NCBI GenBank assembly: GCA_964035545.1
Contig: OZ037772.1
Coordinates: 3,625,538-3,689,537 of the forward strand
DNA: 64,000 nt
Source of the DNA: Bugula neritina
Lineage: Eukaryota; Animalia; Bryozoa
Reading direction: 5' to 3'
The notes under the pieces were generated by a model. The model was not told the origin of the DNA, did no database searches, and worked only from the letters and a program-made list of their open reading frames with translations. Every line of letters begins with the position of its first letter. Position 1 is the first letter of the stretch. Shown piece by piece: positions 1,662 to 43,598 of the stretch. The position numbers and the translations under genes are program-made.

Positions 1662-2267
1662 TACATGCATATATCATCCTACTAGTAATGGATTACTAAG
1701 TACAACTCATCCTATGACTCACTCTTCTTATGCTAGCTGCACGAGATAGACAACTCACACGTGACACACACTCACAGTGCACTAGCTCTTGACACATTGC
1801 CAAGGATGATGAAATGACAGTTTCGCACCACTCCTAGCAGTTAGAGTGGCAGGGAATAGTTGTAGTATGTTGTAGTATTGGCTCCTCAGAATTCACCCCT
1901 CAGTAATTAGCTGCATTGCACAAACTTGCAACAATAGTGAATAATTATTGACAATATGGCCTCCACTCAGTAGTTAACTAGTAATTTATCTTGTCATTTT
2001 ACTCTACAAGTTACAGTTGAGTCTGTTTGTTGAGTAGCAGTTCTTTGTCATGAGTGACTATTTTCCAGCATATTAAGTACATAATATAGTCAAGTGTGTT
2101 TGTGTGATAGCCTGTGGTCTATATAATGAATGTGTGTTGATGAGTGATGAGTATTTATTTGAGTATTTGTCAAGGACATAGCTGTGTGTGTGGATGGAGT
2201 ATTTCATTACTTGAGATATACTAAACACAGCTAACACAGGTAACATACTGATTGCTATATATTGTAG

Positions 2268-5200
2268 GAAAGATCACTATGACATCACAGATCCCACAAC
2301 ACTACCAGTAGCTCAGCATGGAGACCCGTTAGAATACAAGTCTCCACCCAAACCTGCACCCATTCCTTGCGATGTGTGTAAAGGTGGAACACAAGCTGCT
2401 GTGTTTTGTCTTGAGAGTCAAAAGAAATTATGTCAGCAGCATCAAGAAGTGAGTCTTTCTTATATAATTTCTCAAGATTAGTTACTAAACCAGTTCTGGT
2501 TTGTGTGTAGAATATTGTTGAAAAGAAATGTTGAGTCTGTAGGACTTTTTATACTAAACACACAGTTTCACAGTGCAGTGAGTCAACTATGACAGACTTG
2601 TTGGTGAAAATACAACCAACTAAACTGTTGACCTTTATTATACAGAATCACAGAGAGCTGATGGGAGATAGACATCAGTTTATTGACATTGAGGTCTACA
2701 GAGCTTCTCCCCAAAGATATACTATAACTAAATGTGAACATCATAAACAGGAGCAGCTGACAGAAGTGTGTTCCAAGTGTCACCAGATATTCTGTATGAG
2801 ATGTGATATGAGGACTGGCTGTAAGGATAAGACAGGTATTTACTTGCTATTTCTATTTCTGTAGAAAGAAACTGAGAAATATTACAAGAACCTGTTATTT
2901 ATTATTTTATTATTAAAGTGAGTTATGTAACAGTAAAAGAGGAAGTAAGTTTGTCAGCATTAAGGTTTGTGAGACAGAAGTGGATAGTGCAGGAGTTTAT
3001 ATTCTCACTGTTATGTTGAATATTTAGTATATTTCATCCTTCAAGTGTCTGTTTCCTTGATAAGATGGTATAGGCATAGCTTTAACTCAGTGGTGTCCCA
3101 CCTTCTTCATACCATCCTCCTTTTTATGATTATTTTCTATTAAGTTTCCGCCTTTTTGATAAAATTGTAATTTCATTTATAAAGAAAATCTGGGACAGGT
3201 TGTTTTCCTAATAATTCATTGAGTGTAGAAAAAAGCACATTGTGTTTGACATGAATTAGTGTCTGCCACAGCTTCAGTTCAGCTTTGAAAGCATTGATGC
3301 TGCTATTAAAAGCAGTGAGTTGATGATTATAATCATTCATTTTAGGTTCAGAGTTTTTAGTACAGCAAATATATCTACTAGGTATGCAATAAGTAGTTTA
3401 TGGAGATCAGATTGACTCACTGCAAAAACTTGCTGTTGGTTTTTACTTTCAAGAAACTTTTTAACCTCCATTCATAGTAGGAGGTGTAGCAGCTAGGGTA
3501 GAAAAGGAAAAGGCACTTTGTGTTTGGCATGGACCAGTGTCTGCCACAACTTCAGTTTAGTTATAGTTATACATATACATGTAACCTGGAAAACAAGGCA
3601 AGAGCTCAAAGAGCTGGTAAACTGTGTGAATTTTTTAGAAATTAAACCCCTAAAAAGCCCGAATTCCTTGCAAGGGGAATCCCCCAAGGTTGGGAGCCAC
3701 TGCTCTAACTTTTTCAATTATATTATTCCAAGTGCAGTTATTAATGAGCTAACCTGTGAAATATTTCTAGTCCAACCAACTGTCTACTTATTACATAGTA
3801 TGTGTGTAGTGATACATCATCAACCTGTAGTTACAGGTAGTAGGTGTAGGATAAGTACAATGTCACATCTATAATAATGTTTTTATAAATAGTGTGATTT
3901 TATGTATACAGAGGAGACAGTAGCATTCCATGACTTGGCATCTTTGAGTGATTTGTCTTGTGAGTTACGAGAAAGTCTGACTAGTGGAATAGAGACTCTG
4001 TCTGAGAAAGTTGCAGAGTTGAATGACATCTCAAAGGATGCCTGGAAAGAACTGAGTAAAATAGAAGATGAAGTGAAGAAGATGGTTGCCAGAGTAAACG
4101 CTAAAGCTAATGCTCAGGTATGCTAACACGGTGATGTCCTCTAATGTATTTCTGGTTGGCTGAAATTAGGTTTTGCATTTGGTTTTTGAGTTGTAAATAG
4201 AAATAAATTTCATTTGTCACTAGAATTAACTGGCCATTAAAGCTTTATCATTCTGTGAACAAGTAGCAGTAGTCATTCATCACATGTTACTCAGTGCAGA
4301 GGAACCTGTCAATACAGATGACTCACTCATCCTTCTGCAACTGTCAATCACTCACACAGAGAGGTTGGCTGTGTGAGTGATTGACAGGTGTCAGGAGGAG
4401 GAGACTAGTCACGTGATGTACTAGCTCTCTGCTGTGTATAGAGTGTCACGTGACTGAGTCATTGTCCACTCAGTGGGCAATCTGTTATTTTCATTTCAAG
4501 TGCAGAGGTTGTGAGGTGCAGAGGTGGTTACACTGTGTTACTATTTATTAGATAGAAAAGATTAGAAAGAGAGCTACAAACCTGAGGCTAGAAATATATG
4601 GATATTTGAAGAGCTGCACACAGATAGTGGATAATTATAGAATAGAGCTGGCCTTGAGTAAGACAATGGGCAGACAGTCTCTGCTGGACACAGTACAACA
4701 TGCAGTTGATAAGTTCAATGATGCAGGGATTGTGAGAGACTACAAAGAGATGAGTGAGAAGATGGAAAAGGCTACAGATATTGGTGTAATAGAGAAGTGT
4801 GTACTTCCAGACAGCATCTTGGTACCAACATGTAGGTGGAGTCTATAAATATTAACACTAACTATAAATAACTTTCTGCTTGTAATCATGTGAGTTGCTT
4901 TTACTGAATATTTTAATAGTAGAATAAGTAGATAGAGTTTATTTATTAGAGAATTAAGTTTTTTTTCACTCTCACATTATGAGACATTTCTGCAGTGTTT
5001 CAGAGTTTATGATGTATAAGTGAGCTGCTAAACTGTGTTATGCTGACTACCTGCTGTCAGTATTAACAAGATATTCTCACTTAGACCTGTGCATCACGTA
5101 GCAACTTGTAGTAACTACAGACTGCTTGTATTTAAACATCTTTTACTTTTAAGTTTGAAAAGCTGTTCCCACCTCCTCAGGTGATGAGATTCTCAAGTTA

Positions 5201-7050
5201 TAGAATTGTTATTTTGTTGTTGCAGACAGTGAAGACAGTCTGGGACTGAAGCTGCTGCAGCCACCATCTTCTCTCCAGTCTGATGGACTTCCTGTACGTG
5301 ACTGGTGTTTCAGAGTAAACATCTCAGCTGATGGACATGTGATGTGTCGGACAATAAAAGGTGTAGAAGTAAGAAATAGAGACACTCTGGATACTATCAG
5401 CTCAGTGGAGGACACCAACACTACAGGGTGGTGGGAGAGAATCCAACCTGAAGGGGTGATGGTTGGCTGCTGGTATAACAAGAAGGAGAAAACAGCTGAA
5501 GTCTCACTTCTTGATCCGAACTCCTTTGAGAAGACTCGCTCTCTCTTCAAGCAGTCAGTAGATGGACCCTTCCTCACTTACTATAGTATAGCTCAACACG
5601 ACTCACTGCTCTATATTGTAGACACGAGTGAGAAACAGCTGGTAGTCTGTAACCTAGTTGACAATAAAATACAGAAGTTCTCACTTCCTGAGATGAAGTA
5701 CCCTCACTCTGTATGCATCCTCCCAGACTCAACTCTCCTCATAGGAGACTGGACTCCAGATGGTAAAGTGAGAAGATATAAAGTAGAGAACACAACTCTC
5801 TCTCTGATGTGGGAGTTTCCTCACATCTCATGGCCAACTGGTATTTCCTTTGATCCAACATCTGAACTGATTCACATCTGTACAGAGATAGGACCTCTCC
5901 TCATCATCTCACTGGAAGGTAAATACTCTGTTAATTATAGTAAGTCTAGTTATTTATATATAATTATGTTGCAGTAAATAATATATTTTAATAATTAACA
6001 GTAAACAACTTCCACTCATAAGATATATTATGATATTGTTAGTATTTATCAAGTCACTGATGTTATTTTTAGCTGAAAGTTATGTAATAAAGACTGTAAC
6101 ATGCTGATAGTAGATGTTATATTCTTCATCACATGACTTGTAGCTAATAATAATGTTAGTGAATAATACTGCCTCCCTACAATAAGTTTATTTCCAGCTG
6201 CAGTAACATGCAGGGTGTAAGCACAGGTAGAAGTGTATATTATACTGTATAGGTTTAAGGTGTACTCTGTGCAGTGTGCAGTGAGCTCTTAGTAAACTCT
6301 CTATTCAGTCTTCCTTTCCAAGGGTTCACCTGGTAGAGTAGAGGATAGGGACTCCACACTGCTAAGTGAGTTGGTGCTGCAAGGGGTTCAAACCCACCTA
6401 TCAGCATGTCTAGTTAGTATACTATGCAAGTGTTTTACAGTAATTTTAGAGGTGCTCAGTCTAACAACTGTGCAGACTGCCAGCTACACATGAGTTATGA
6501 GTTGTAGTTTGACTTCAGTCTAGTGCTGCTGTTGTTTTGGTCATCAGATAATTTAATTATGAATAATTTGATACTTTTTGACTGCCATTACGGAGACTAT
6601 TGTAATTTGATGGTAGCTGGTAGAGCAGTGTTTGCTGGTGGAACTCAGGTGGCTGTGGTTGGTTGTTGTCAAGTATTTAATATGTGATAATGATAGCTGC
6701 AGTGGTATTAGAAGTAGACATGTGGGTGTGTTCTTGCTCAGAGCCACAGGCTAAGTTTATGGGTCAAGGTCAATATTGTTGTATAACGAGACACTGTTTT
6801 CTATTTGAGTATTTACTTCATGCATGTAACCTGCTTAGTTGCATCTTTAAAGGCAGTCTGTCTGTTTCTCTCAATACACACCAACTGATACAATATGATG
6901 CTATTGTTTACAGGTCAACTGGTGCTTACAGTTCCCAGAGAAAGTCTTGGTGTGAGTAACTGGGTGTTGGACATTGCTGTGTATAACAGAGACACAGTGT
7001 TTCTAGCATGTAGAGATGGTGGTCTGAGGAGATACACAATAAAATACTAA
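2268..7050 (+). CDS. TRIM-family protein, paralogue A (B-box1, B-box2, coiled coil, NHL-like beta-propeller); RING exon not in window
   Basis: GT-AG exons with consistent phases: 2268-2448 (CDVCKGGTQAAVFCLESQKKLCQQH), 2646-2835 (CEHHKQEQLTEVCSKCHQIFCMRC), 3912-4117 and 4552-4831 (heptad coiled coil), 5226-5918 (propeller blades: YIVDTSEKQLVV, YPHSVCILPDSTLLIGD, WPTGISFDP), 6914-7050 (GQLVLTVP...LRRYTIKY*). About 562 codons with no internal stop. AATAAA near 7227. The first exon is phase 2, matching the RING exon at 62908-63089. Confidence 0.88.
3088..3702 (+). mobile_element. Non-autonomous hAT (Buster/Charlie-like) MITE in TRIM A intron
   Basis: Ends CAGTGGTGTCCCACCTT / AAGGTTGGGAGCCACTG; 8-bp TSD CTTTAACT / CTCTAACT with central TA. 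Related copies at 34102, 59195 and 63388. Confidence 0.8.
4272..4465. repeat. Palindromic/foldback intronic element (likely MITE remnant)
   Basis: Core stem GTCAATCACTCACACAG...CTGTGTGAGTGATTGAC with weaker outer symmetry; also present at ~35290-35480. Confidence 0.5.
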
Positions 7051-8612
7051 ACTTATCAGCTACAGTTTACTAATAATCAGCTCAGTGAGGTCCTGAGAGA
7101 TGAATTGGATAATATTTGTCATCAACATAATTATTTCATCACAATTCATCAATACACACACTCTGTAATTATAGTTAGATATGAGATGTTTTACTGTATC
7201 GAATATATGCTGCTATTTTACCATCTAATAAAGTTTATTTGTTAGTGAAAACATAGTCTGTTTTCATGCCTCTTTAGCTTTAGTTCAAGTTGAGTTCGGT
7301 TAGTAACAATAATCTATACTGGAGCAGTAACTGTAAATGACTTGTTTGTGAGAGAATTTATACACTGAATTGACATGCAGGTGCAAGTAACTCCAACATG
7401 ACTAAGTAAATTTATTACAACCATTCATAATAATATACATTCCACTGCTGTGTATACGACAGTATTAAGTAGCCAATCAAATTGTTTCTTGTCATGCAAT
7501 CAGGGATCTGATAAATAATACATAAGTCAATCAACTAAATATAAACACTGTTTTACTCTGCACATGAGCTGTCTGTGATGCAGCTGCTTTGTAAAATATG
7601 TGTAATTTGATGAGTTTAGTTCAATTGGTTAAAGTTTAATGATGACATGTTCCCCATTCACCTGGGAGAAATCCTATGAGGTATAATAGAAGACAACTCC
7701 TAAGCATGTCCAAAGGCATCCTTTTAGTAAACAATATATTGCAATGCTACCATCTGATTGGACAATTATGTCCTCATAAAATATAAGCTTAGAGCTCTTG
7801 AGTAAATTGAAACTAGTTGCCAAATGGTGATGGTAACATTTACATGTAAACTCAACTCTTTCAGGTATAGGTATTATAGTACTGATGGGTTTGTATTACT
7901 TTTACCTGCAGGGCTGACTACATTATAAATTGGTTAATTCAACTCATCTTGGATTCGACTACTACAACTTATATATATAGTATTCGGAATAACTCCAAAG
8001 TAGCATGTTTCTGTTAAAATAACATTTATAATAAACAGATAAATTATATATTTACTGATTCAATCACTATTTGAGTTTTCAAATTGAAATTCAATAAGAG
8101 AGATCAGCAAGTAATAATCATATGTTATGTAATAATATATGCAACAAAAAAGCATCATTATAAAATTTAACAAAATGTATTAGCAGTTATCTATACTGAG
8201 ATTATAATGTAATACTAATGTTGTAAAAGTATTGAACTATCAATTGATCAACCCCCTCTCTTATTATTTAACCTTTGACCTACAAACAATGCTTTCTTGT
8301 TGCTATTATACTGTCTTTTTTTAGTTGGCTCATAGAAACAGTTTCAATCTAACAAGGTAGTGTTGATACAAATCAGAGAATATGAGCTCAACAATAAAAC
8401 ATAAGAAATAAATATCCTCAATATCCTAACGAATATTCCAGAGAACACTGCAGGCTAAGCTAAGATATTTTACAACTACATGCAGTTGACATATCTTCAT
8501 GAATTGTGGACCATTTTGGTGCTTCTGTGTGCACAGACAAGTTGTAATGACTCCAACAGAAACTTTCTCAGTAGGTTTCAGTTCATCTTGAATATATTAC
8601 AGCTTGTTGTCA

Positions 8613-8762
8613 TTTGGCCTCAATATTATTGATGATACACTACCTTGTTTGGCCTCAATAGTGTTGATGGTACACTACCTAGTTTGGCCTCAATAGTATT
8701 GATGGTACACTACCTTGTTTGGCCTCAATAGTATTGATGGTACACCACCTTGTTTGGCCTCA
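8613..8762. repeat. 35-bp tandem repeat, ~4 copies
   Basis: Unit TTTGGCCTCAATAGTATTGATGGTACACTACCTTG; paralogue at 39643-39793. Confidence 0.85.
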
Positions 8763-9640
8763 TTAGTCTGGCTAATATAAAATTAACAGCACAGCTTGCA
8801 AGATTTAACTAATTTAACTTGGTTCATATTATGATGTTAATATGCTGACATTTATAACCTCTGATATATTTCTATGTTTATAACCTATCAATATGCTCTG
8901 ATCTACAGCCTTTATTGTCATTCAAGGTGTTGCTCACTGCTGGTCAACCCCATTAACCCCCAACTTACTGTCTACATAGAAAACTGTCTACTTCCCCTCC
9001 ATGGTACATAGCTCATACAATGTGTATAATTATTTGCTTTTGCACATTCATTACATAAAATACCAGCCATTGTGCTAAAAGTAGAGTTTTGTTGTAGTCT
9101 CACATATTGGAACATGGCCTTAAGATTTGTAGTTTCTGAAGCTTTTATTAAGCTAATGCAGGAGAAAATTGCTAAAAATTTACTGCAGTGAATCTTTGTA
9201 TAAACATTACTTATGAAATGCATATCTGTGGAATACTTGATCTACTCTGTATCATGTAAACTAACTTACACACAAGTTATATACAGCTACTACTAGATAA
9301 GGAAGTAATAGACTTACACTAACAGAGTTATTGACATGAAAAAGTAAATAATATTTAAATTGTGATGACTAAGTAAGTGGATGAGTCATAAACCAGTCAA
9401 AAAATAATTTCTACAAACAAACTTTATTGAGTGAATGTGACTACAGAGTCTTGACAACATAGCAGAGTAAATAATTATGTTACATAATCATTACTATCAA
9501 CATCAAATACTGCATATAAGCAGTGCAAGTTCTGTGGAATATATAATATTATACTGTGAGTAGAACACAATATATTATATTTGACATGTACTATTGATGA
9601 CCTCACTGAGCTGATTATTAGTAAACTGTAGCTGATAAGT

Positions 9641-9777
9641 TTAGTATTTTATTGTGTATCTCCTCAGTCCACCATCTTCACATGCTAGAAACACTGTGTC
9701 TCTGTTATACACAGCAATGTTCCACACCCAGCCACTAACACCAAGACTTTCTTTGGGAATTGTTACCATCAGTTCAC
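9641..9777 (-). pseudogene. Orphan inverted copy of the TRIM terminal exon (A-minus)
   Basis: After a TTTTTTAAAG acceptor it reads GELMVTIPKESLGVSGWVWNIAVYNRDTVFLACEDGGLRRYTIKY*. Frame, stop and a minus-strand AATAAA (~9423-9428) are intact. No upstream TRIM exons on this strand; homology stops at the minisatellite at ~10394. Confidence 0.85.
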
Positions 9778-10393
9778 CTTTAAAAAATATGTCAGATTGA
9801 ATCAGTTTGAGACAAACAGACAGACTACAGTGACATCACAACAGCTGACACCACTACAAGCAAGTTTCTACTTTCTAGTATATTATAGTAACTGAAATAT
9901 ATTCGATAATAATACAATAAATTTCAAATATATTTCTCACTCAGAAAGACTTCCTTTAAAGATGCAACTAAGCAGATTATGTTGAAGATAATAAAGTTCT
10001 ACCAGTCAGTATTGAATAATTCAATGAGCTGCTCTACTGTTTACTTCATAATAAATGACAACATGGAGAGACTCAACATAGAAATTTACCCCCTCAGCAA
10101 ATATGATTATACAGGAGAGAAGATATATAATATAAGTATTACATACATGAAGTAAATATTCTAACAGAAAATAGTGTCTCCTTATACGACTGTATTGACC
10201 TTGACCCACAAACTTAGCCTGTGGTTCTTATATAGAACACACCCACATGTCTACTTCTAATAATACTGCTACTGCAGCTACTCCAACATTATCACATATT
10301 AAATACTTGACAAGAACCAACCGCAGCAACCTCAGTCCCACCAGCAAACACTGCTCTACCAGCCACCATCAAATTACACTAGTCTCAGTAATA

Positions 10394-10650
10394 ATTACAT
10401 AATATAGGATATATTACATAATATAAGATATATTACATAATATAAGATATATTACATGATATAAGATATATTACATGATATAAGATATATTACATAATAT
10501 AAGATATATTACATAATATAAGATATATCACATGATATAAGATATATTACATAATATAAGATATATTACATAATATAATATATATTACATGATATAAGAT
10601 ATATTACATGAAATAAGATATATTACATAATATTAGATATATTACATAAT
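10394..10650. repeat. 19-bp minisatellite, ~13 copies
   Basis: Unit ATTACATRATATAAGATAT. Confidence 0.93.
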
Positions 10651-10873
10651 AATTATATACTCTTTCTATAATGTATAATCTTGCATACACATACAGCCAT
10701 TAAAACCTCTTGCCATTTAGTTTAAGTTTATCAATTTAGACACAAAATGCATTTGATCTTCAGTCCCATGACTGTCAAAACAACACATTTCACATTCATT
10801 GGTTATACAAGAGATTGTTTCTCCAATAATAGCAGCGTTACTCTAAATTAAAAAACCACTATAAAGTTATCAG

Positions 10874-11564
10874 TTAATTAAACAGAGTCATCTAAAGGGT
10901 ATACATGTAGATATAGAATAAGTTAATTGAATCGAGTCATCTAAAGGATATAGATATAGAATAAGTTAATTAAACAAAATCATCTAAAGGGTATAGATAT
11001 AGAATAAGTTAATTAAACAGAGTCATCTAAAGGATATAGATATAGAATAAATTAATTGAATAGAGTCATCTAAAGGGTATAGATATAGAATAAGTTAATT
11101 GAATAAAATCATCTAAAGGATATAGATATAGAATAAGTTAATTGAATAAAATCATCTAAAGGGTATAGATATAGAATAAGTTAATTGAATAAAATCATCT
11201 AAAGGGTATAGATATAGAATAAGTATATTGAATAGAGTCATCTAAAGGGTATAGATATAGAATAAGTATATTGAATAGAGTCATCTAAAGGGTATAGATA
11301 TAGAATAAGTATATTGAATAGAATCATCTAAAGGGTATAGATATAGAATAAGTTAATTGAATAGAGTCATCTAAAGGGTATAGATATAGAATAAGTATAT
11401 TGAATAGAGTCATCTAAAGGGTATAGATATAGAATAAGTATATTGAATAGAGTCATCTAAAGGGTATAGATATAGAATAAGTATATTGAATAGAATCATC
11501 TAAAGGGTATAGATATAGAATAAGTTAATTGAATAGAGTCATCTAAAGGGTATAGATATAGAAT
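10874..11564. repeat. ~43-bp minisatellite, ~16 copies
   Basis: Unit AGAGTCATCTAAAGGGTATAGATATAGAATAAGTATATTGAAT. Confidence 0.93.
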
Positions 11565-12008
11565 GGTAACCACAGACATCAGAAGAAGCAGAAGACACTT
11601 TCTACCACCAGACGTACCTCTTTGAAGGGAAGCTCCCCGAGTAGGAATTGTCCCATCATGACCATGCGGGCCACCCAGAAGAAGAGGATATCCAGTCCAG
11701 TCTCTAGCAGAGTACCCAGGTAGTAGGCTTGCAGGTCGGGGGTGTTATCTGGCCACCCCATAGTCTAGAAAGGAAATATTCCGGAACTAAACCATGTGTC
11801 CAGCACATCCTCATTTGTATAAAAGGCAGGAAATGGAACAATGTTCAGAGTTGTCTTCTCTGACAAACTGAAACTGGGGTTAATTTACTCAAAGGAAGTG
11901 TCTAGTCCGTGAACAAAAGAAAGTAAATTATCAATAAGTAGTTAGAGAAATGTAGCTCGCTGCTTTACTATAAAGGAGAAGAGAAAGTTGGAGATGTGTA
12001 CATAATGA

Positions 12009-12270
12009 ATATATACTCAATACATACTCAATACATACTCAATAAATATTCAATACATACTCAATACATACTCAATAAATATTCAATACATACTCAATAT
12101 ATACTCAATACATACTCAATATATACTCAATATATACTCAATACATACCCAATATATACTCAATACATACTCAATATATACTCAATACATACTCAATATA
12201 TACTCAATATATACTCAATACATACTCAATGCATACTCAATACATACTCAATACATACTCAACATATACT
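12009..12270. repeat. 11-bp minisatellite, ~23 copies
   Basis: Unit ATAYATACTCA; source of the spurious ORF 11996-12364. Confidence 0.93.
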
Positions 12271-15200
12271 TGAGCTCTCAGATGAAATAGACTTACCCTG
12301 GCTAAGATTGATGACATCTGGATGTACGTTAAACTTTATTGCTGCCTTTGACAGCGCTTCATGATAGGATCTGCCAGTCACCCAGTAGTTGTTGTCACTA
12401 GACTATGTAAAATATATAGAGGTTAAGAGGTCACTAGACTATGTAAAATATATAGAGGTCGAGAGGTTACTGAACTATGATGAATAGACTATCACCGGCT
12501 TTCCATGTACCGATCTGAGCATATCTCTCAGATGGATCGTTTTTCCACGAGAGTGTCAGATGGATCTCACGGAGTTGCCTCCTCTTAAGTGAAGAGTACT
12601 TTAATAGTATAATTTGTTCACAAATCTGGATGATTAAAGCTGCCGAGGTTAAAAAACAAGATTGTTGATGTCTAAAAAATAATGGTGCTTGTAAACAATA
12701 CACAACAAAGCTTTTAGTGTAAAGTAATATAGCCAATTTAAGATAATCACTTTTAATTTTTTAGCTCAACAGCTTAAATAAAATTAATAGCTATCTTGCA
12801 GATTATTCATAAACTTACAGGATTGTTAAGCTTGAAATTACGCAGCAAATAACTAATGAAAGTAAGTTTTACTAGTCATTTAAATTCAATTTAAATGCTC
12901 CAATTTTTTGTAATTTCTACTCTAATTTTATATAATTGAGTTTTTTTAATCATGGTACTGAAAGTCAAAGTTTTGGCATCTGAAAATGTGGCTATCGTAA
13001 TTATTAAGTAATTTGCTTAGCAATTATCAATAAGTTACTGAGTATTGATATACAATTATATATTTACCAAGTGTTTACCAGATCCAACTTCACAGTCACT
13101 ATACTCAGAGTACACAACTCCCAGTAAGTTAGTATCAAGCTAATTAACCACTAACCCCCTATTCACACTTACCGTATCGTACGCCGTAACAGCAAATATC
13201 AGCCATTTTTACAAATGTCTGAGCTTCCTGTACGGTGTTGCGGTACGGTAGGTTCAAGCACTGCTTGATTCAAATAAGTTGCGGCGGACTCCTATTGGAC
13301 AGAAAAACTTTTGCGTTAATTCATTGGATATAAATGTCCAATGTAGCGTCATAGATCGTACCTAATAGCGGACTTTGAAAACTTCAACCCGCACCTTAAA
13401 CCAAAATGGAATAATAAAATTAAAGAACTTAGGCTATCTCAAGTTCTCCACTACTGCTCCTAAGTGAGAAAGTAAGAATAGTTAGAGAGATCTACTGGAG
13501 TTACTTCAACTGGCAGCAAGAGTCAGCCATTATTACGTTGCTAAGCAACAAAGCTATTAGTGACATTGATGTCTACTAACCCAACATAGTTTCCAATCTA
13601 GTTGTGGCCACAATGATCTCTTCGTCAGAGTCTTCTACTTTATATGCAAAGGAAAGGAGAACTCCGAACTCCACCTTCTCCTTGTAGCCCGGCACAGAGA
13701 GCATAGCCCTTCCTGTCAACTCTACTTTGTCTACCTGCAATCAGTGATACAACTCTCTCAGACTATACAGGTCAAAGGTTAAACTGTAGTGTGTGCTTCT
13801 GAGTCACTGCGTTCGCATTCTTTTCTATTAGTTCACATTGTGTGAAAGAAATGAATATGTGGCTGTGGTCTCATTGATGTATTCATTCGAAGATAGTCAT
13901 AATGTAATATATCAGGTAGTGTCTGATAGAATATTACTGGATATTACTATTAGGTTAGTTACCACCAACACACAAGTCTCGCAGTGAATAACCAGTTGAC
14001 GTACACACAGCCGGAAGTTAGACTGATACTGTACGATATACCTCAATATCAGAGACGGCAGAGTTGAGAGTACAGGACCAGTTGACGAGTTGGTTAGCTC
14101 TGTAGATCACACCTTTCTCGTGCATTCTGATAAACGCTTCGTTCACCGCTTTTAAAGATTTCTAATAAACAAGTATATATGAGTCATGTGTCAAGTGTGA
14201 GCTGATTGGAGACCAGGCCTCATGATAAACCAATCATAGAGAGGATAACACACTGAGTCAGTAAACAGTCGACACGACATATAGACTCCACTACTCAAAC
14301 ATAATACATGTATAGAGAGGATAACTCCTCACCTCATCCATAGTGAACGTAGTTCTGTCCCAGTCATAAGACCCGCCCACTTTCCTCAACTGATGGTAGA
14401 TTCTGTCTCCTTTTCCATAGAAATTATATAATAACACTGACCAATCGTTGTGCTGCAAAACTTAGTTATATTAGCAACTTAAATAATGAGACCAATGATA
14501 GAGTGTGATGAAGTAAACCTATATTTAACTTTTTGTATATTCAATTATATATAAGAATTTTAACATATTAACGCTATTATATTATCTTATATCAAACTGT
14601 AGCAACTGCACACCAATAAGATAAAATAAAAACTCAAACCCGAATACTAAGTCGCTATGAAATGCATTTTCAAGATAAAATATTCCCTTACTGGTTTTTC
14701 CAGTCCCACACTCGTCTCACTAACTCATCTCGTCCCAAATCGTGTCGAGTTTTATTCTCTTCTCTAGCGAGTTTTTTCTCGACGACCACTTGTGTGGCTA
14801 TTCCTGCGTGGTCACATCCGGGTACAAACAGTGTCACCTTCCCATTCATCCGGTGCCTGACAATATAACAGAACTGACACCTGCAGACACCTGATAATGC
14901 AAGCATATCAGACACCTGCAGATATTCTGGAAAGGTGCTGAGAGAAATATCTGTGGTTGAAACAACATCAATATAATAAATGACTGACTTACGCCAACCG
15001 GTACTTAACACAAATTTTATAAGCATTCAAAAAAGAATCAACAGGGGGATGTTCATAGCCTGTCTGTGGAATATGTCAGAGTGAGTTGGCAAGATGCCAA
15101 AATGTCATGTAGTCACCACCAGAGGAATGGTGTCTACTGTTACATGCTATAAGCTACATACACCACCAGTTTAGTGACTAGGTAAGTACGGAGTTGTCTC

Positions 15201-15637
15201 ATCTATATGAATGAACATCTCACCACCAAACTATCGCATCCTCAACCGCCCCCGTGAGGGCCTGTCCTAGGTGAAGAGTCCCGGTCACGTTAGGGGGAGG
15301 GATCATGATGATAAACTTCTCTTCAGGTGTGAGTTTCAGTACATCTCTACCTGTTACAAAGCAACCAATCACATCTCTCTCGGTTACAAAGTAAAAAGCA
15401 ACTAATCACACTACCTGTTACAACAGAGTAACAAATCACACATCTACGTGTTAGAAGTAACCAATCACACGTTATAGACTTTACTATGATGAGAAGTGTA
15501 CCTTTGAGATTATACTCAGGTTTGAAGAATCCTTCCTTCTCCCACCAAGAGTACCAGGCAGCTTCCACATAGGACGGGGAGTAAGAATCAGGCATGGGAC
15601 ACGTCGTGTCTAGAATAACAGAAAACTATAAAGTATA

Positions 15638-15991
15638 GGGGAGCAGCTGTGGTCTAGGGGTTAGAGCGTTTGTCTAGTGAATATGAAGCCATTGTTTGAC
15701 AAAGGCCATTGGTGACGTTAAGAAGAGCATCCAGTCATAATTGCTCCTGTGCCTCATCTAAATAAGTCCTTAGCCTGTTTTAACAAAAATCCCTTTCCAC
15801 CAGGAGTCTCTCCCAAGGATGGTGACTATACACTGATATCTAGATATACTAAGTTGAGACTTGTCTTCTACTGGTCCATACAGTTCAAATATGATGAACA
15901 CATGTATAAATACAATAATCTATCCATAGCCCATAGTCTAACCACCAACAAGAACGAATAAATAAGACTGTGGCCTGACACTACTACTACA
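15638..15991 (+). mobile_element. Degenerate tRNA-derived SINE in VARS intron
   Basis: tRNA-like head GGGGAGCAGCTGTGGTCTAGGGGTTAGAGCG (A box), a central TGGTGACGTTAAGAAGAGCATCCAGTCATAA resembling the MetaSINE core, and a (CTA)n tail. Confidence 0.55.
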
Positions 15992-17182
15992 ACTTATATA
16001 ACTTATACACAGCAGACTGTTAGGAGTATTTGAATCTGAGGCTATCCAATGTATGAGTAGGGCAGCCCTAAATGTAGGATATTGGAATACCATGTCTTAT
16101 TACTTCAGTCTAAAGCAGTGTTTATACCTTCACGATGTTCAGTCAGAAATTCAATTTTGATGAGTTGCATTTCATTGTAAAAGCCAATCATCAAAATTTT
16201 TGCTTTGTACATGCCTAATCAAATAATTTTAGAGTAACAATCAAAGGGAATGATAACTCCTTTAGATATGGGGTATTCATGTTTATAATTACACCGGCTG
16301 TCTTTTTCAATTATCACTTTTATGCTGTCAACTTAATTTATTACGTTTTCAAAGGGCATCAAATAGTGATTAAGCGAGTTATATTTGAGTATTACAGAGT
16401 GAGCTTCCTTATTAATATGATTTCAACAACTTTAAGTAAGACTGCTTACACACATAACTGTGTGTTCACTAGCGAGCAGTGTACACTGATAAATCAGTGC
16501 TTCAACTGAAACTTGTAAGTAAAGGAATGAAGAGCTCAATTGAGTATAAAATGTAGAGAATAATTGAACTGAACCTTTCTTATGGCCAACTGGTGTGTCA
16601 TCGACATACGTTACTACAGCCTTCTCCTTTTTCTCTTTCACTTTTTTCTAGAAAAAAAAATAATCAAATTTGAAGAAAATAAAATGGAAATTGTTAGCTA
16701 CAGATACAGACAACTTCCAGGTAAAAGTACAGCCATACAGTCCCAATACGAATATGTAATTCAAGTAACACTTTCATGTAGAAGTACAACCATAAATATG
16801 AATAGAAAGTAACACAAATATATACATTTAGGAGCAGTAGTGTAGAAATCGAGATAGCCTAGGTTCTTTAATTTTATTATCAAATTTTGGTTTGGGGCTT
16901 GGGTTGAAATTCTTACAAAAACACAACTTCTTATGCTACATTTCTAATCTAGAACACAGGCTTTCTCAATTTCTCCATTACTGCACCTACCTTAGTATAT
17001 ATAGAACCTGTAACTAACTAAACAGACACCTCGGTAGTCGTGGCAGACTCTGCCTTCTGTTTAGCCTGCTTAGCTTGAAACTTGGCTAGTTTAGCAGCTT
17101 TAGCAGCTTCTTTCTATAACTCTTTCTCAGATTTCACCTTGACCTCGCCAGTTGGCGCATCACCAGGGTTCACTTCCGACAT

Positions 17183-17480
17183 GTTCGTTTATTGTGAGAC
17201 TTTCCTTAAAACACAATCAGCCGGCATGGAACTAATAGATATCTCAATACTAAACATACAAACTATTGACCCAGTATAGTTATAGACAGATATCTTAATA
17301 CTAATAATATAAACTAATAGCTCAGTATTGCGTTAGTTATGCGTGGGGGTTCAGTGATAACACGCCTATAAACCACACAGTTCAATAATGAAAGACTGTG
17401 ACTTTTCACGAACAGACATCTCATCTCTGATTCTAATGAAAAATCACGAAATTTTCAAACAAACGATACTGCATTTCAAC
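17183..17480 (-). promoter_or_regulatory. Probable retained VARS promoter/5' UTR region
   Basis: CpG-containing patch directly upstream of the VARS ATG (17182) in an otherwise CpG-poor background; deleted in block B. Confidence 0.4.
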
Positions 17481-18166
17481 TTTGTGACTATCACATGATA
17501 ATAATCATTGTCATTTGAAAGATTCTGCTAAAATCGAAATGCCAATGTTAATCACAAGGTCAACCATAAATGACTCAGTCTGATGACTGACGGTTATGCT
17601 TAATGATTAATTAGTAATATGAATAGATTGCAAGTCATCAGCATGATGATGGTGATTATTGCTTTTCACCATCAAAGGTCAAACTTTGTAATTGCAGCTT
17701 GAAATGTAAAATTAAATAATATTACTTTTATTTAATTATACAAGTATAACTTACCATCATAACAACATTCAACTTTATGTAGTCATTATAAACATGATAA
17801 TGGTTTACCTTTTACTTTAGGTGATCATTATACTATTCACGATTATCATTATGTCTACCATTATGATTATCTCAACTTTAACCTATCAATTACGATAATT
17901 AACCATTTATTTTTTAATGATAAAAACTTAAATCATTGAATGAACACTAAAAGTAATTTAAATTCACACTTTTATTATCATAACTATCAAATTAATATTA
18001 TAAGGCATATTTGATTTTTAGATTACAATAATAATTATCAAATCATGGTATAGAATTAAATATTATAGTTAATATTATTATAAATATAATTAATATAATT
18101 GTATTTATTGAAACTAAAATAGTAAGGTAAACTAAATGAATTATCGACATGAGTATGAGTATGAGT

Positions 18167-18680
18167 AGGCCACAACTAGAAGGTGCAGCAGCAATTTGAG
18201 ATCCCCGTTTGCAATACCTCATCAAAGATATAGAACAGGTGCAAAATAATGCAATCAGATTCATTGCTAAATTGAAAGGCAGAGACAGTATCACTGTGGC
18301 ACGTGACAAACTAAACCTAGAAACTCTCCCCGACAGACGCTTCAAGCTGAGGCACAAGTTACTGTTGCGACTTCTATCTAATGAGGGAAATCAGGCATCT
18401 CTAACCAACTCCTATGAACTGATGAACAGTAAAACCTAAAATACTAGGTTTACTAAGGCATCAAGCAGGGACGATCCCCCAACCATTTTTGCAAAATCAG
18501 CAGCCTACTACAGCAGCTTCTTTCCAAAAACAGCCCGAGAGCTTAAGTCTATGCTAAATAATTAGTCAATACACCAGAGTTGTATATGTGCAACATACTG
18601 AAAATACTTGCTAGCCTGTAATCGGCAACTGTAGAGGCGTGCCTCTTGCTACATGCTCTAATGCGTGTAAGAGGTAAGAG
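18167..18680 (+). mobile_element. 3' fragment of a CR1/L2-group LINE
   Basis: RPQLEGAAAI*DPRLQYLIKDIEQVQNNAIRFI...LETLPDRR...SSFFPKTAREL matches the post-RT C-terminus (RPxLEY..VWDP...IExVQ...FFPRT). It has in-frame stops and a (GTAAGAG)n tail. Confidence 0.8.
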
Positions 18681-19892
18681 GACTATCAATATGACTATCA
18701 ATATTAGTAGGAGTACCCAAGTACCAGTAGACATAGTAGCTGTAGAAAGTCTATCTCAATCAGTAACTGTAAGCCGTGAGGGCTGAGACTATAACTAGGA
18801 ATATAAAAAACTATAACTTGAGTATAACTAATTGAAGGTGAGTTAACATAAATTAAAAAATAATAAATATAATTACTACAAAATCAAAATGAAATATGCA
18901 TTATAAATATTTATATTTTTATTTTATAATAATCTTTTAATTTATTTATATCATTTTATTTAGGTTCATCACCTTTCATTATGATTAATGAAATTGATAA
19001 ATCATATTCATAACGATAATGATGATCACTTAAAAAAAATTGATAAACCCATAATCATAACCATAATGATTATATTTATTATTATCATTTATCGCTTATC
19101 AGTTATCAGTGATAATCATAATCATAATGATAATGATAATCTTGATCATAATCAATATGAATATCAATATCATGTTATACTTATTCAATAATTATAATTG
19201 ATTGATTCTTATTCATATTAATAATGAATAAAAAATTATATTAACACTACAACTTACTTAATTAGAGTATTACATTTAGTGATTTACTATTACTATTACT
19301 ATCGGTATTATCACTATTACTATTACTATTAGTATTACTTACAACTTGCTTATGCAAGGGAATTAAATCTTTAAAGCGTAGCATCCTTTTCAAGCAAAAT
19401 AAGGATAATAAGTTTCGTCAAATTGAGTTAAAAACTACAACTTATAAGTCACAAGTATAAAGCAACTTATGCTCAGTCATCACTAATCCTAGTGGGTACG
19501 GCAAGTATATAGCATAATTTATTTCACAATGCGACAAGATTATCTAGACGGTGCGCTTACGCCTCTCATTGTACTTAAGCAATATCCAATTGTACGGTTT
19601 TTATGACTTTAAAACCCGTTTTTGAGAAGCAAGGCTCAGTGTGGTATATTTAAGAGTGTTGCCATTAGCAAATCTTACGGAATCATATGGGCGCCATTAT
19701 GCCGAGATTGGTACCGCGAGTTTATATAAGTTAAAAAAGGAAAAATTTTGCCACTTTTGTTATTTTATTTTTTTTTATTTTATGTGTACATTTTTTTTTA
19801 ATTTTTTTTATTGGTAAAGTTTTTAAACACATTTTTAATGCACATAAAATTAAAAGAAAAATTAAAACTCAATCATGCACATAAATACAAAG

Positions 19893-32043: not shown

Positions 32044-33280
32044 ATGTAGTGATTGTGTAGTGAGAGTGGAGTGTCTGGTTATTGTCCATGGTTATGTGTA
32101 ATCTGTAAGGAGTAGAATTATATTATTTTAATATAATGTTGAGAGAGGTACTTTTATAATGGCAGTTTGCTCAATAGCTTTAGTTCTAATGCGATAGACT
32201 CATAGCTCTGGAGTCTAGCAGCTGCTACTATTACCAGTAGCTGTTCAACATCCGGGCTGCCAAAGTGTACTAGCCATTGACAAGGCCAAGCAGTCACTGG
32301 GAAATTATTTGACTAAAGAGCAGGTCTTATGACAATTAGTAGTCAGTCCCTTAGACAGGAATCAGTAATTCTGTGACCTATTTAGTTAAATCCAATGCTG
32401 ACCTTTTGATTGATTATTAGATAGCCATCACAATTTTATTTGGTACAATATAATATTATGGGGTGTCAATCAGTGTCTAATATAGTCTGTGAATTGAGTG
32501 TCTACTTTAGTTGGTTACTTCTTCTACCATCAGTCAGTTGTATTAAGTGTTACTCTGTATTGAGTCATGAATAGTTTGAGGATTTGGGCCTATATTATGC
32601 CACCCCCCTCTCTGACTTAGACTGAGACCCAACCTGCTGCACATACATAGCAGTACTACACTGAAGATAGTTAACATGTGTATGTGTCATCCTACTAGTA
32701 ATGAATTACTAAGTACAGCTTATCCTACGACTCCCTCTTTTTACGCTAGCTGCACGAGATAGGCAACTCACACGTGACACGCACTCACAGTGCACTAGCT
32801 CTTGACACATTGCCAAGGATGATGAAATGACAGTTTCGCGCCACTCCTAGCAGTTAGAGTGGCAGGGAATAGTTGTAGTATGTTGTAGTATTGGCTCCTC
32901 AGAATTCACCCCTCAGTAATTAGTTGCATTGCACAAATTTGCAACAGTAGTGAATAATTATTGACAATGTGGCCTCCACTCAGTAGTTAACTAGTAATTT
33001 GTCTTGTCATTTTACAATACAAGTTACAGTTGAGTCTATTTGTTGAGTAGCAGTTCTTTGTCATGAGTGACTATTTTCCAGCATATTAAGTACATAATAT
33101 AGTCAAGTGTGTTTGTGTGATAGCCTGTGGTCTATATAATGAATGTGTGTTGATGGGTGGTGAGTATTTATTTGAGTATTTGTCAAAGACATAGCCATGT
33201 GTGTGGATGGAGTATTTCATTACTTGAGATATACTAAACACAGCTAACACATGTAACATATTGATTGCTATATGTTGTAG

Positions 33281-36200: not shown

Positions 36201-38077
36201 CATGAGATTCTCAAGTTATAGAATTGTTATTTTGTTGTTGCAGACAGTGAAAACAGTCTGGGACTGAAGCTGCTGCAGCCACCATCTTCTCTACAGTCTG
36301 ATGGACTTCCTGTACGTGACTCGTGTTACACAGTAAACATCTCAGCTGATGGACATGTGATGTGTGGGACACGACGAGGTGTAGAAGTAATAAATAGAGA
36401 CACTCTGGATACTATCAGCTCAGTGAAACACACCAACACTACAGGGTGGGGGGGGATAATCCAACCTGAAGGGGTGATGGTTGGCAGCTCGTATAACAGA
36501 GAGGAGAAAACAGTTGAATTCTCACTTCTTGATCCGAACTCCTTTGAGAAGACTCGCTCCCTCTACAAGCAGTTAGTAGATGTACCCTACACTTACTATA
36601 GAATAGCTCAGCACGACTCACTGCTCTGTATTGTAGACAGGAGAGAGAAACAGCTGGTAGTCTGTAACCTAGTTGACAATAAAATACAGAAGTTCCCTCT
36701 TCCTGAGATGAAGATCCCTCGACCTGTATGCATCCTCCCAGACTCAACTCTCCTCATAGGAGACTCTACTGCAGATGGTAAAGTGAGAAGATATAAAGTG
36801 GAGAACACAACTCTCTCTCTAATGTGGGAGTTTCCTCACATCTCATATCCATCTGGTATTTCCTTTGATCCAACATCTGAACTGATTCACATCTGTACAG
36901 AGAGAGGACCTCTCCTCATCCTCTCACTTGAAGGTAAATACTCTGTCTATTATAGTAAGTTTAGTTACTTTATATATAATTATGTTGCAGTAAATAATAT
37001 ATTTTAATAATTAACAGTAAGCAACTTCCACTCATAAGATATATTATGATATTGTTAGTATTTATCAAGTCACTGATGTTATTTTTAGCTAAAAGTTATG
37101 CAATAAAGACTGTAACATGCTGATAGTAGATGTTATATTCTTCATCACATGACTTGTAGCTAATAATAATATTAGTGAATAATACTGCCTCCCTGCAATA
37201 ATTTTTTTTCCAGCTGCAGTAACATGCAGGATGTAAGCACAGGTAAAAGTGTATATTATATTGTATAGGTTTAAGGTGTACTCTGTGTAGTGTGCAGTGA
37301 GCTCTTAGTAAACTCTCTATTCAGTCCTCCTTTCCAAGGGTTCACCTGGTAGTGTAGAGGATAGGGACTCCACACTGCTGAGTGAGTTGGTGCTGCAAGG
37401 GGTTCAAACCCACCTATCAGCATGTCTAGTTAGTATACTATGCAAGTGTTTTACACTAATTTTAGAGGTGCTCAGTCTAACAACTGTACAGACTGCCAGC
37501 TACACATGAGTTATGAGTTGTAGTTTGACTTCAGTCTAGTGCTGCTATTGTTTTGGTCATCAGATAATTTAAATATAAATAATTTGATACTTTTTGAGTG
37601 CCATTACTGAGACTATTGTAATTTGATGATGGCTGGTAGACAGTGTTTGTTGGTGGGACTCAGGTGGCTGTGCTTGGTTCTTGTCGAGTATTTAATATGT
37701 GATAATGTTGGAGTAGCTGCAGTAGTATAGTATTAGAAGTAGACATGTGGGTGTGTCCTTGCTCAGAGCCACAGGCTAAGTTTGTGGGTCAAGGTCAATA
37801 TTGTTGTATAAGGAGGCACTATTTTCTGCTCTATTTGAGTATTTACTTAATGCATATAACCTGCTTAGTTCCATCTTTGAAGGCAGTCTGTCTGTTTCTC
37901 TCAATACACACCAACTGATACAATATGATGCTATTATTTACAGGTCAACTGGTGCTTACTGTTCCCAGAGAAAGTCTTGGTGTGAGTGCCGAGGTGTGGG
38001 ACATCGCTGTGTATAACAGAGACACAGTGTTTCTAGCAGGTAGAGATGGACTGAGAAGATACACAATAAAATACTAA
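33281..38077 (+). CDS. TRIM-family paralogue B (B-box1, B-box2, coiled coil, NHL-like propeller); frame intact but RING exon/ATG missing, so possibly a 5'-truncated pseudogene
   Basis: Exons 33281-33461, 33659-33848, 34927-35132, 35570-35849, 36244-36933, 37944-38077. All are GT-AG with consistent phases and no stops. No RING exon is visible between 7050 and 33281. Confidence 0.85.
34102..34729 (+). mobile_element. hAT MITE, same insertion as 3088-3702
   Basis: CAGTGGTGTCCCACCTT...AAGGTTGAGAGCAACTG; flanks CTTTAACT / CTTTAATT. Confidence 0.78.
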
Positions 38078-41000
38078 ACTTATCAGCTACAGTTAACTAA
38101 TAATCAGCTCAGTGAGGTCCTGAGAGATAAACTAGATAATATTTGTCATCAACATAGTTGGATTCATTACAATTCATCATTACACACACTCTGTATTTAT
38201 AGTTAGATATGAGATGTTTTACTGTATCAAATATATGTTGCCATTTTACTATCTAATAAAGTTTATTTGCTAGCGAAAATATAGTCTGTTTTCATGCCTC
38301 TTTAGCTTTAGTTCAATTTGAGTTCGGTTACTAAAAATAATCTTTACTGGAGCAGTAACTGTAAATGACTTGTCTGCAGGAGAATTTATTCACTGAATTG
38401 ACATGCAGGTGCAAGTAACTCCAACATGCCTAAGCAAATTTATTCCAACCATTCATAATAATATACATTCTACTGCTCTGTATACAACAGCATTGAGTAG
38501 CCAATCAAATTGTTTCTTGTCATGCAATCAGGAATCTGATAAATAATATATAAGGCAATCAACTAGATATAAACACTGTATTACTCTACACATGAGCTGT
38601 CTGTGATGCAGCTGCTTTGTGAAATGTGTGTAATTTGATGAGTTTAGTTCAATTGGTTTCAGTTTAATTATGACATGTTCACCATCATGTAATATTAGAG
38701 GACAACTCCTCTCCAGTGTGCAGTGGTAGTAAGTATACTATTAGTTAAAGGGAGTGCTCAGTATAATATAAATAGCTGACCTCTCCTACACCAACACTCC
38801 TGAACACCAGCTAGACGACAAGAACTCTTGAACACCACTCAGGTTAAGGGACTCCACCCACCCAGGCACCCCTGAACACCATCCAAGGCAGACGTGTTCT
38901 GGATCACAGTCTTAACTCCTCACAGACTAAGACAGGAGCTGGAGTCATCCTCACAGCCAAGCAACCCATGCCAATATACCAACCCTAGCTGACCTGAATA
39001 CTACAACTTATATATAGTATTCGGAATAACTCCAAAGTAGCATATTTCTGTTAAAATAACATTTATAATAAACAGATAAATTATATATTTACTGATTCAA
39101 TCACTATTTGAGTTTTCAAATTAAACTTCAATAAGAGACATCAGCAAGTAATAATCATATGTTATGTAATAATACATGCAACAAAAAGGCATCACTCTAA
39201 AATTTAACAAAATGTATTAGCAGTTATCTATACTGAGATTATAATGTAATACTAATGTTGTAAAAAGTATTAAACTATCAACCCCTCTCTCATATTATTT
39301 AACCTTTGACCTACAAACAATAATTTCTTGTTGCTATACTGTCTGTTGTCTAGTTGGCTCATAGAAACAGTTCCAATCTAACAATGTAGTGTTGATACAA
39401 ATCAGAGAATATAAGCTCAACAATAAAACAGAAAGAAATAATTATCCTCAATATCCTAAGGAATATTCCAGAGTACACTGCAGGCTGAGCTAAGATATTT
39501 TACAACTACATGCAGTTGACATATCTACATGAATTGTGGACCATTTTGGTGTTTCTGTGTGCACAGACAAGTTGCAATGACTCCAACAGAATTTTTTTTA
39601 GTAGGTTTCAGTTCATCTTGAATATATTACAGCTTGTTGTCTTTTGGCCTCAATATTATTGATGATACATTACCTTGTTTGGCCTCAATAGTATTGATGG
39701 TAGACTACCTTGTTTGGCCTCAATAGTATTGATGATACACTACCTTGTTTGGCCTCAACAGTATTAATGGTACACTACCTTGTTTGGCCTCATTAGCCTT
39801 GCTAATATAAAATTAAGAGCACAACTTGCAAGATTTAACTAATTTAACTTGGTTCATATTATGATGTTAATATGTTGACATTTATAACCTCTGATATATT
39901 TCTATGTTTATAACCTATCAATATGCTCTGATCTACAGTCTTGATTGCCATTCAAGGTGTTGCTCACTGCTGGTCAACCCCATTAACCCCCAACTTACTG
40001 TCTACATAGAAAACTGTCTGCTCTCCCTCCATGGTACATAGCTCATACAATGTGTATAATTATTTGCTTTTGCACATTCATTACATAAAATACCAGCCAT
40101 TGTGCTAAAGGTAGAGTTTTGTTGTAGTCTCACATATTGGAACATGGCCTTAAGATTTGTAGTTTCTGAGGCTTTTATTAAGCTAATGCAGGAGAAAATT
40201 GCTAAGAATTTACTGCAGTGAATCTTTTTATACACATTACTTATGAAATGCATATCTGTGGAATACTTGATCTACTCTGTATCATGTAAACTAACTTACA
40301 CACAAGTTACATACAGCTACTACTTGATAAGGAAGTAATAGACTTACACTAACAGAGTTATTGACATGAAAAAGCAAATAATATTTAATTTGTGATGACT
40401 AAGTAAGTGGATGAGTCATAAACCAGTCAAAAATTAATTTCTACAAACAAACTTTATTGAGTGAATGTGACTACAGAGTCTTGACAACATAGCAGAGTAA
40501 ATATGTTACATAATCATTACTATCAACATCAAATACTGCATATAAACAGTGCAAGTTCTGTGGAATATATAATATTATACTGTGAGTAGAATACAATATA
40601 TTATATTTGACATGTACTATGGGTGTGCATTGATGACTTCACTGAGCTAATTATTAGTAGACTGTAGCTGATAAGTTTAGTATTTTATTGTGTATCTCCT
40701 CAGTCCATCTCCACATGCTAGAAACACTGTGTCTCTGTTATACACAGCAATGTCCCCCACCAAGTCACTAACACCAAGACTTTCTCTGGGAATTGTTACT
40801 ATCAGTTCACCTTTAAAAAATATAATGTCAGATTGAATCAGTTTGAGACAAACAGACAGACTACAGTGACATCACAACAGCTGACACCACTACAAGCAGG
40901 TTTATACTTTCTAGTATAATATAGTAACTGAAATATGTTCGATAATAATACAATAAATTTCAAATATATTTCTCACTCAGAAAGACTTCCTTTAAAGATG

Positions 41001-41428
41001 CAACTAAGCAGATTATGTTGAAGATAATAAAGTTCTACCAGTCAGTATTGAATAATTCACTGAGCTGCTCTACTGTTTACTTCATAGTAAATGACAACAT
41101 GGAGAGACTCAACATAGAAATTTACCCCCTCAGCAAATATGATTATACAGGAGAGAAGATATATAATATAAGTATTACATACATGAATTAAATATTCCAA
41201 CATAAAATAGTGTCTCATTATACAACTGTATTGACCTTGACCCACAAACTTAGCCTGTGGCTCTTATATAGAACACACCCACATGTCTACTTCTAATAAT
41301 ACTGCTACTGCAGCTACTCCAACATCATCACATATTAAATACTTAACAAGAACCAACCACGGCCACCTGAGTTCAACCAGCAAACACTGCTCTACCAGCC
41401 ATCATCAAATTACAATAGCCTCAGCAAT
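37603..41428. repeat. Large inverted repeat: TRIM B last intron/exon (37603-38119) versus inverted copy (40635-41428)
   Basis: Same architecture as 6587-10392. Confidence 0.92.
40677..40810 (-). pseudogene. Orphan inverted copy of the TRIM terminal exon (B-minus)
   Basis: GELIVTIPRESLGVSDLVGDIAVYNRDTVFLACGDGLRRYTIKY*; acceptor, frame, stop and minus-strand AATAAA (~40453-40458) are intact. Confidence 0.85.
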
Positions 41429-41429
41429 A

Positions 41430-43377: not shown

Positions 43378-43598
43378 AATTATATACTCTTTCTATAATG
43401 TATAATCTTGCATACACATACAGCCATTAAAACCTCTTGCCATTTAGTTTAAGTTTATCAATTTAGACACAGAATGCATTTGATCTTCAGTCCCATGACC
43501 GTCAAAACAGCACATTTCACATTCATTGGTTATACAAGAGATTGTTTCCCCAATAATAGCAGCGTTACTCTAAATTGAAAAAAAACTATAAAGTTAGA

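Follow-up and report, generated by a model that had tools for sequence, protein, structure and literature searches.

In the palindromes of the human Y chromosome, inverted repeats undergo gene conversion from arm to arm, while the pseudo-V segments of chicken immunoglobulin loci and the cassettes of lamprey VLR genes act as silent donors for diversification. Bacteria and plasmids possess shufflons, switches which operate by site-specific DNA inversion, and truncated unprocessed pseudogene fragments occur in tandem arrays. These systems are the closest counterparts of an element found behind two TRIM genes, A and B, of the bryozoan Bugula neritina, namely an inverted partial copy of the gene's tail comprising part of the last intron and the whole terminal exon (hereafter the orphan; A- behind gene A, B- behind gene B). 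Both genes lie in a 64,000-nt stretch of assembly GCA_964035545.1, on contig OZ037772.1 (C8), which is referred to as the window and to which positions given without a contig apply. A first-pass annotation had proposed that the orphans are ready-to-use alternative last exons, held as invertible or donor cassettes. The present analysis indicates that they are very probably gene relics, the truncated 3' ends of a paralogue, which receive gene conversion passively.

In common with truncated pseudogene fragments in tandem arrays, the orphan is a paralogue 3' fragment without upstream exons, which evolves neutrally and bears scattered lesions. As in such fragments where interlocus conversion takes place, it shares polymorphisms and mosaic tracts with functional genes. 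It differs from them in being splice-ready, with an acceptor, one exon and poly(A) signals, in lying inverted ~2.5 kb behind a gene, and in having been amplified 25-fold with its repeat unit and being apparently transcribed. The host genes resemble TRIM-NHL proteins, which constitute class VII, subfamily C (PMC3503706), in having a RING domain (31.6 bits in the RING exon of the next gene, Pfam cut-off 25.2), a B-box, a putative coiled-coil and a C-terminal NHL-like beta-propeller whose distant relatives carry NHL repeats, with the B-box (22.2 bits, cut-off 24.1) and NHL (14.2 bits, cut-off 20) scores under the Pfam thresholds. Unlike in these proteins, the propeller is extremely lineage-specific (31 matches among 1.84 billion representatives), hypervariable at loop codons and present in >100 tandem copies.

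The window contains two tandem units (~1674-19240 and ~32687-50053; mutual identity 93-96%), each with a plus-strand gene carrying B-box, coiled-coil and NHL-like propeller exons and with an inverted partial copy about 2.5 kb downstream of it. In unit A the inverted arms pair 6587-6692 with 10287-10392 (92%), 6699-6829 with 10139-10269 (87%) and 6902-7092 with 9599-9789 (92%), and the same layout is found in unit B (37603-38119 and 40635-41428). Both orphans retain an AG acceptor in phase 1, 44-45 codons, a TAA and an AATAAA that overlaps the final codons, and a second minus-strand AATAAA of A- (9423-9428) is conserved in B-. In a tblastn comparison using every exon of gene A, the last exon alone had a minus-strand match in the window, and no further TRIM exons were found on that strand. 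The arms and this comparison together confirm the annotated architecture, an inverted last-intron part and full terminal exon behind A and B, with acceptor, stop and AATAAA and without upstream exons. A- and B- meet a 19-nt minisatellite at the identical base.

The same element has been found elsewhere on the contig. The window is part of a giant tandem TRIM array (RING/B-box/coiled-coil/NHL-like propeller) on C8, in which the expressed gene tail is termed P-type and the orphan tail M-type. The annotation had asked whether other cluster members hold the inverted cassette, and 25 M-type copies were found, all on C8, among >100 array units; all of them run against the orientation of the local array, usually 2-4 kb behind a P-type tail, and most array units are without an orphan. 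All 25 orphan loci were retrieved for comparison, which was made on short loci. The same minisatellite junction occurs in 22 of the 25, with L044, L045 and L052 secondarily rearranged at this outer, minisatellite-side junction. A junction common to so many copies shows a single truncation and a single orphan origin, with truncation preceding amplification, which agrees with the earlier proposal that it predates the block duplication.

Comparison with other paralogues shows that the orphan was not copied from the tail of the gene beside it. The orphan intron keeps ~290 nt, in two blocks, which the P-type intron is without, and this extra sequence (within 9790-10138) has homologues in TRIM introns on contigs C1, C2, C4, C5 and C6. 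The orphan 3' flank past the arm (9200-9598, 399 nt) has full-length homology to the 3' flank of genes on C2. One of these, L055, is a complete gene with RING, B-box, coiled-coil, propeller and last exon, and its tail runs colinear with that of the orphan over the intron insert and at least 300 nt of 3' flank; the P-type tail matches this gene only as far as the arm end. Taking into account that intron insert and flank match C2 paralogues beyond the arm end, the orphan represents the 3' relic of an older paralogue with the ancestral tail structure, and it appears that this lost paralogue was originally placed tail-to-tail with the P gene. As a separate observation, the outermost 106 nt of the arms (6587-6692 and 10287-10392) are ~95% identical to the C2 paralogue intron and more conserved than the remaining intron; no Rfam match and no significant fold were found for the block at 6587-6692.

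Selection on the orphans has been assessed by treating the framework codons of the exon separately from the hypervariable ones (14-20 and 34-37). The ratio of non-synonymous to synonymous polymorphism (pN/pS) over the whole exon of the 25 orphans is 0.88. On the framework it is 1.01 in orphans and 0.16 in genes, and private framework variants (non-synonymous : synonymous) number 15 : 2 in orphans vs 5 : 11 in genes (Fisher p=0.0013). Framework diversity is 0.031 in orphans vs 0.026 in genes, the former being similar to that of the orphan intron (0.034) and orphan flank (0.026; rearranged copies re-aligned). At the hypervariable codons, private variants number 4 : 0 in orphans vs 33 : 1 in genes, and diversity is 0.117 vs 0.232. 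Given the framework ratios, the orphan exon drifts without purifying selection, unlike the expressed last exon. Damage has also been detected, as L045 has lost its acceptor (AG>AA), L042 its stop (TAA>TAT), and L050 carries a ~35-nt duplication over the acceptor and exon start. The count given earlier for A- and B-, seven substitutions, all non-synonymous (Nei-Gojobori sd=0, nd=7), together with one GGT codon indel, proved correct. Its reading as a departure from neutrality did not hold: with 101 of 132 sites non-synonymous, seven out of seven is not unusual alone (P ~0.16), the A-/B- divergence of 5.2% equals that of the flanking duplicated block (5.6%), and framework pN/pS and diversity are those of unselected sequence. 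Of the signs in orphan copies named beforehand as contradicting a cassette, the neutral pattern is present and premature stops are not; lesions occur in three copies.

A further claim, that orphan differences cluster at the codons which vary between genes, was substantiated. Common orphan polymorphisms (minor allele at least 0.2) occur at 6 of 30 hypervariable positions vs 21 of 934 non-coding ones (odds ratio 10.9, p=1e-4). The orphans hold 2-4 alleles per hypervariable codon, with 8 of 12 variant states also found in P genes and 4 private; several orphan loop alleles, the codon pairs GAC-TTG and GGC-TGG, are present in genes too. Of the 14 common orphan polymorphisms over the whole arm, 8 also vary in genes, between identical alleles (odds ratio 19, p=1.7e-6). 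Sharing extends to the non-coding arm taken by itself (3 of 7, p=0.006), and some of the shared polymorphisms are synonymous. Since selection on protein cannot explain sharing at non-coding and synonymous sites, these data argue for sequence exchange, and gene conversion, not selection on the orphans, explains the clustering at loop codons.

With regard to direction, the orphans L048 and L050 carry P-type codons 4-7, while M-type codons 2-7 were found in none of 31 P genes. All multi-site tracts that can be oriented (L048, L050, L040) run from gene to orphan, and most conversion has probably gone this way. Cis partners resemble each other no more than random gene/orphan pairs do (permutation P=0.7), and their indel concordance (9 of 11 vs 0.61 expected) is not significant, which indicates that the exchange is array-wide and weak. 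The orphan thus resembles the Y palindromes in that nearby inverted arms exchange sequence and a crossover between arms can invert the spacer, and differs from them in its short (~0.5 kb) arms of 87-92% identity, in cis partners that are not more alike and in the weakness of the exchange.

From these observations the following history has been proposed. An older TRIM paralogue would once have stood tail-to-tail with the present gene and would have lost everything upstream of what later became the minisatellite point. The resulting relic, made up of the distal part of the last intron, the last exon, the 3'UTR and flank, formed once and was copied with the unit into 25 of >100 units. It codes for nothing selected and drifts neutrally, with some copies already damaged. 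The ~500 nt still 87-92% identical to the gene tails, in inverted orientation, allow short-tract conversion and, rarely, crossover, and this exchange imports the genes' loop variants, giving an apparently non-neutral pattern in the orphans. The C2 ancestry, mosaics and shared polymorphism all agree with what had been offered as the mundane alternative to a cassette, a tail-to-tail paralogue remnant which passively receives conversion tracts.

Several observations weigh against a passive relic. Acceptor, frame and stop are all kept in 22 of 25 orphans, which is not significant; 1.3 premature stops are expected against none seen (37 minimal substitution events, P(stop)=0.035), so that the open frames are no evidence of constraint. 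Conversion from orphan to gene may occur as well. Evidence on orientation comes from assembled paralogues and short Logan contigs, and one run, X1, shows two opposite-strand joints, of 6800 to 10165 and of 6962 to 9592, with 34-40 nt on the shorter side; these joints are uninterpretable, as they stem from short contigs of a multi-copy family. The remaining point concerns transcription, for which Logan contigs, which do not give the strand, were used. Runs X7 and X15 are RNA-like, with high exons, a low P intron and a spacer near zero from 7114 to ~9180, and both show the normal joint between the propeller exon (donor after 5918) and the last exon (6914). In these runs orphan-specific sequence is covered, at a depth of 426 over 9408-9621 in X7 vs ~0-12 in the spacer, and at a depth of 77 over 9183-9629 in X15. 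The M-specific intron has a depth of 9-57, and one contig runs unspliced across the orphan acceptor. In X7, the orphan exon and 3'UTR are covered ~8-fold above the orphan intron, and a contig ends at 9408, 15 nt past the minus-strand AATAAA at 9423-9428. RNA-like coverage of orphan-specific sequence means that the relic is not silent: it is probably transcribed, probably as the terminal exon of minus-strand transcripts through its retained acceptor and poly(A) signals (strand and 3' end inferred).

Two of the alternatives concern the diversification of the expressed genes. The orphans could be germline conversion donors, holding loop variants in reserve for transfer to the expressed last exon, and like the silent cassettes of immunoglobulin and VLR loci they are promoterless partial copies, some of them inverted in those systems, adjoining an expressed, diversifying receptor-like gene. 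The statistically supported exchange between arms, the GAC-TTG and GGC-TGG alleles common to orphans and genes and the single orphan-type bases in the intron arm of a few genes with an orphan partner all fit such a role. Unlike donor cassettes, the orphans are less diverse than the genes, whose 33 private non-synonymous states occur in no orphan, while most orphan states (8 of 12) are shared. The oriented tracts all run the other way, orphan-type codons 2-7 are missing from all 31 genes, cis partners are no closer than random pairs, most units are without an orphan and none has more than one, and there is no evidence of a somatic process; a donor function is accordingly considered very improbable. 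The other alternative, a shufflon-like switch in which germline or somatic recombination between intron arms flips ~3 kb, so that the gene acquires the orphan blade at its end, is extremely unlikely. As in shufflons, inverted repeats flank a segment whose flip would swap the C-terminal coding end, and the acceptor phases match. One locus, L040, is the product of a crossover that joined gene and orphan arms; in it an M-type intron and exon start are followed by P-type 3'UTR and flank to 7515 and then by the P-gene 5' part at 3796; the X1 joint at the homologous positions 6800 and 10165 would also fit. L040 is the sole such product and lies in a unit without a gene body, and it may equally have arisen by arm-mediated inversion followed by deletion or by an unrelated inversion followed by arm-to-arm deletion. 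Flank-based BLAST was used for orientation in place of exact-pattern searches, which found no gene-5'/orphan-3' or orphan-5'/gene-3' hybrid exons and were insensitive (the positive control recovered 11 of >100 genes). All 30 P genes sampled keep a P-type flank and none has an orphan-type one, all close genome matches of the M-type flank lie at orphans, and weaker ones are C2-type genes; no TRIM gene with an orphan-type tail was thus found in the assembly among the sampled genes and close orphan-flank matches. Instead of the short specific sites of shufflons there are long, divergent arms, and partners share a perfect tract of at most 69 nt (A) and 37 nt (B). The window has only 13 open reading frames (ORFs) of at least 110 aa, mostly propeller exons or repeat-encoded, and none is a long, recombinase-sized one; no recombinase match to Pfam was obtained in 3 of these ORFs and 7 other window segments, a scan which leaves split or distant genes outside. 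The geometry needed for a flip, inverted arms with a matching acceptor phase, is thus real, but the one orientation fixed in the assembly and an alternative end that is not under selection speak against a working C-terminal switch. Taken together, unconstrained orphans, their fewer loop alleles and the lack of an orphan-tailed gene in the sample above leave the idea of a ready-to-use invertible or donor cassette unsupported.

A third alternative concerns the transcripts themselves. The strand of the orphan also carries, upstream of it, an amplified N-terminal valyl-tRNA synthetase fragment, which is part of the array repeat unit (at least 35 copies on C8, some in units that have an orphan and some in units that do not), and the orphan could be the used terminal exon of a chimeric transcript from this fragment, in which only the acceptor and poly(A) signals would matter. 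The last exon of the fragment ends at 13581 with a phase-1 donor matching the orphan acceptor, although such agreement has a 1-in-3 chance of arising by accident. The X7 coverage step and contig end described above, and an acceptor kept in 24 of 25 copies despite coding neutrality, point the same way. Conversely, no junction into the orphan acceptor is displayed in the RNA-like Logan contigs, including the type joining SLE to GELMVTIP that had been anticipated for the TRIM gene; the orphan peptide matched only unspliced gene-type genomic ORFs in the protein database, again without a spliced junction; unit B has lost most of the fragment; and the contigs are strandless, with one crossing the acceptor unspliced. 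The chimera is consequently regarded as unlikely. A composite, in which orphan tails are expressed terminal exons of such a chimera and also feed or buffer TRIM loop variants through conversion and rare crossover, appears quite improbable. The preferred reading remains that of a truncated paralogue relic, with the coordinates of its parts and neighbours collected in Table 1.

Table 1. Position, strand and description of the window and of the features in and around the inverted tails (+, forward; -, reverse;., no strand).
Feature	Position	Strand	Description
Window	C8:3625538-3689537		Bugula neritina, assembly GCA_964035545.1; AT-rich eukaryotic DNA
Gene A (P-type) distal last intron, left inverted arm	6587..6913	+	Arm comparison; splice joint ~5918->6914 in RNA-like run X7
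Gene A expressed last exon, A+	6914..7050	+	137 nt, 45 codons + TAA, about one propeller blade
Gene A 3'UTR part still homologous to orphan	7051..7092	+	Arm homology stops at 7092
Spacer between arms	7093..9598	.	RNA-like coverage absent from 7114 to ~9180
Orphan A- 3'UTR and flank	9183..9640	-	Homologous to 3' flank of complete C2 paralogues; covered by RNA-like contigs
Orphan A- last exon (M-type)	9641..9777	-	45 codons + TAA; acceptor AG 9778-9779
Orphan A- last-intron remnant	9778..10392	-	~9790-10138 absent from the neighbour's intron, kept by other paralogues
19-nt minisatellite at the A- truncation	10393..10664	.	~270 nt long in unit A
Amplified N-terminal valyl-tRNA synthetase fragment	13579..16647	-	Several exons, Pfam tRNA-synt_1; on the orphan's strand, upstream of it
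Gene B intron tail, last exon B+ (37944-38077) and 3'UTR arm	37603..38119	+	Arm comparison
Orphan B-	40635..41428	-	Exon 40677-40810 and intron remnant, up to minisatellite 41429-43390 (~1960 nt)

Additional features have been recorded in the window and the array. The last intron of gene A is in phase 1, with its donor after 5918 and acceptor AG at 6912-6913. Within the spacer, a ~45-nt tandem repeat at 8590-8760 reaches very high depth in the DNA-like run X1 and so seems to be dispersed or expanded. Beyond the minisatellites, 43-nt and other repeats extend up to ~12400 in unit A and ~44980 in unit B. Between the TRIM units, at 52000-56720 on the plus strand, lies a collagen-like gene with Gly-X-Y exons and a weak match to the fibrillar collagen C-terminal domain. 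In the genome, the P-type tail gave 136 first-look candidates, and the 40 scored were all on C8 (0.12-4.25 Mb, identity 91-100%). Literature searches found no description of this TRIM array.

Rearrangement and decay are also evident in the array. The orphans L032 (C8:3699222-3700222) and L033 (C8:2401457-2402486) have identical exons in opposite orientation, 1.3 Mb apart, and the same insertion of 1.3-1.4 kb is found in both, 47 nt inside the 3' flank. This suggests that a large segment of the array was duplicated in inverted orientation. At the array edge, L056 (C8:4338000-4345200) is another internally deleted TRIM gene, in which an intron remnant, last exon and flank like those of the orphans lie ~0.7 kb beyond a RING exon. 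The P-type last exon of L030 (C8:2483523-2487035) has a premature TGA in the variable loop (...CKED*), so that decay affects some of the gene copies as well.

As the cassette reading was not upheld, no new diversification mechanism is claimed from the orphans, and they should not be taken as one. What they do show is that gene conversion acts across the array, in tracts of a few tens to ~150 nt. The orphans also constitute a built-in neutral control, since they hold the same sequence as the expressed last exon, in the same array, free of selection. In these copies, private changes accumulate at loop codons no faster than elsewhere. Considered together with the 33 : 1 private non-synonymous to synonymous variants in the genes, this shows that the TRIM propeller loops owe their hypervariability to selection rather than to a mutational hot spot.

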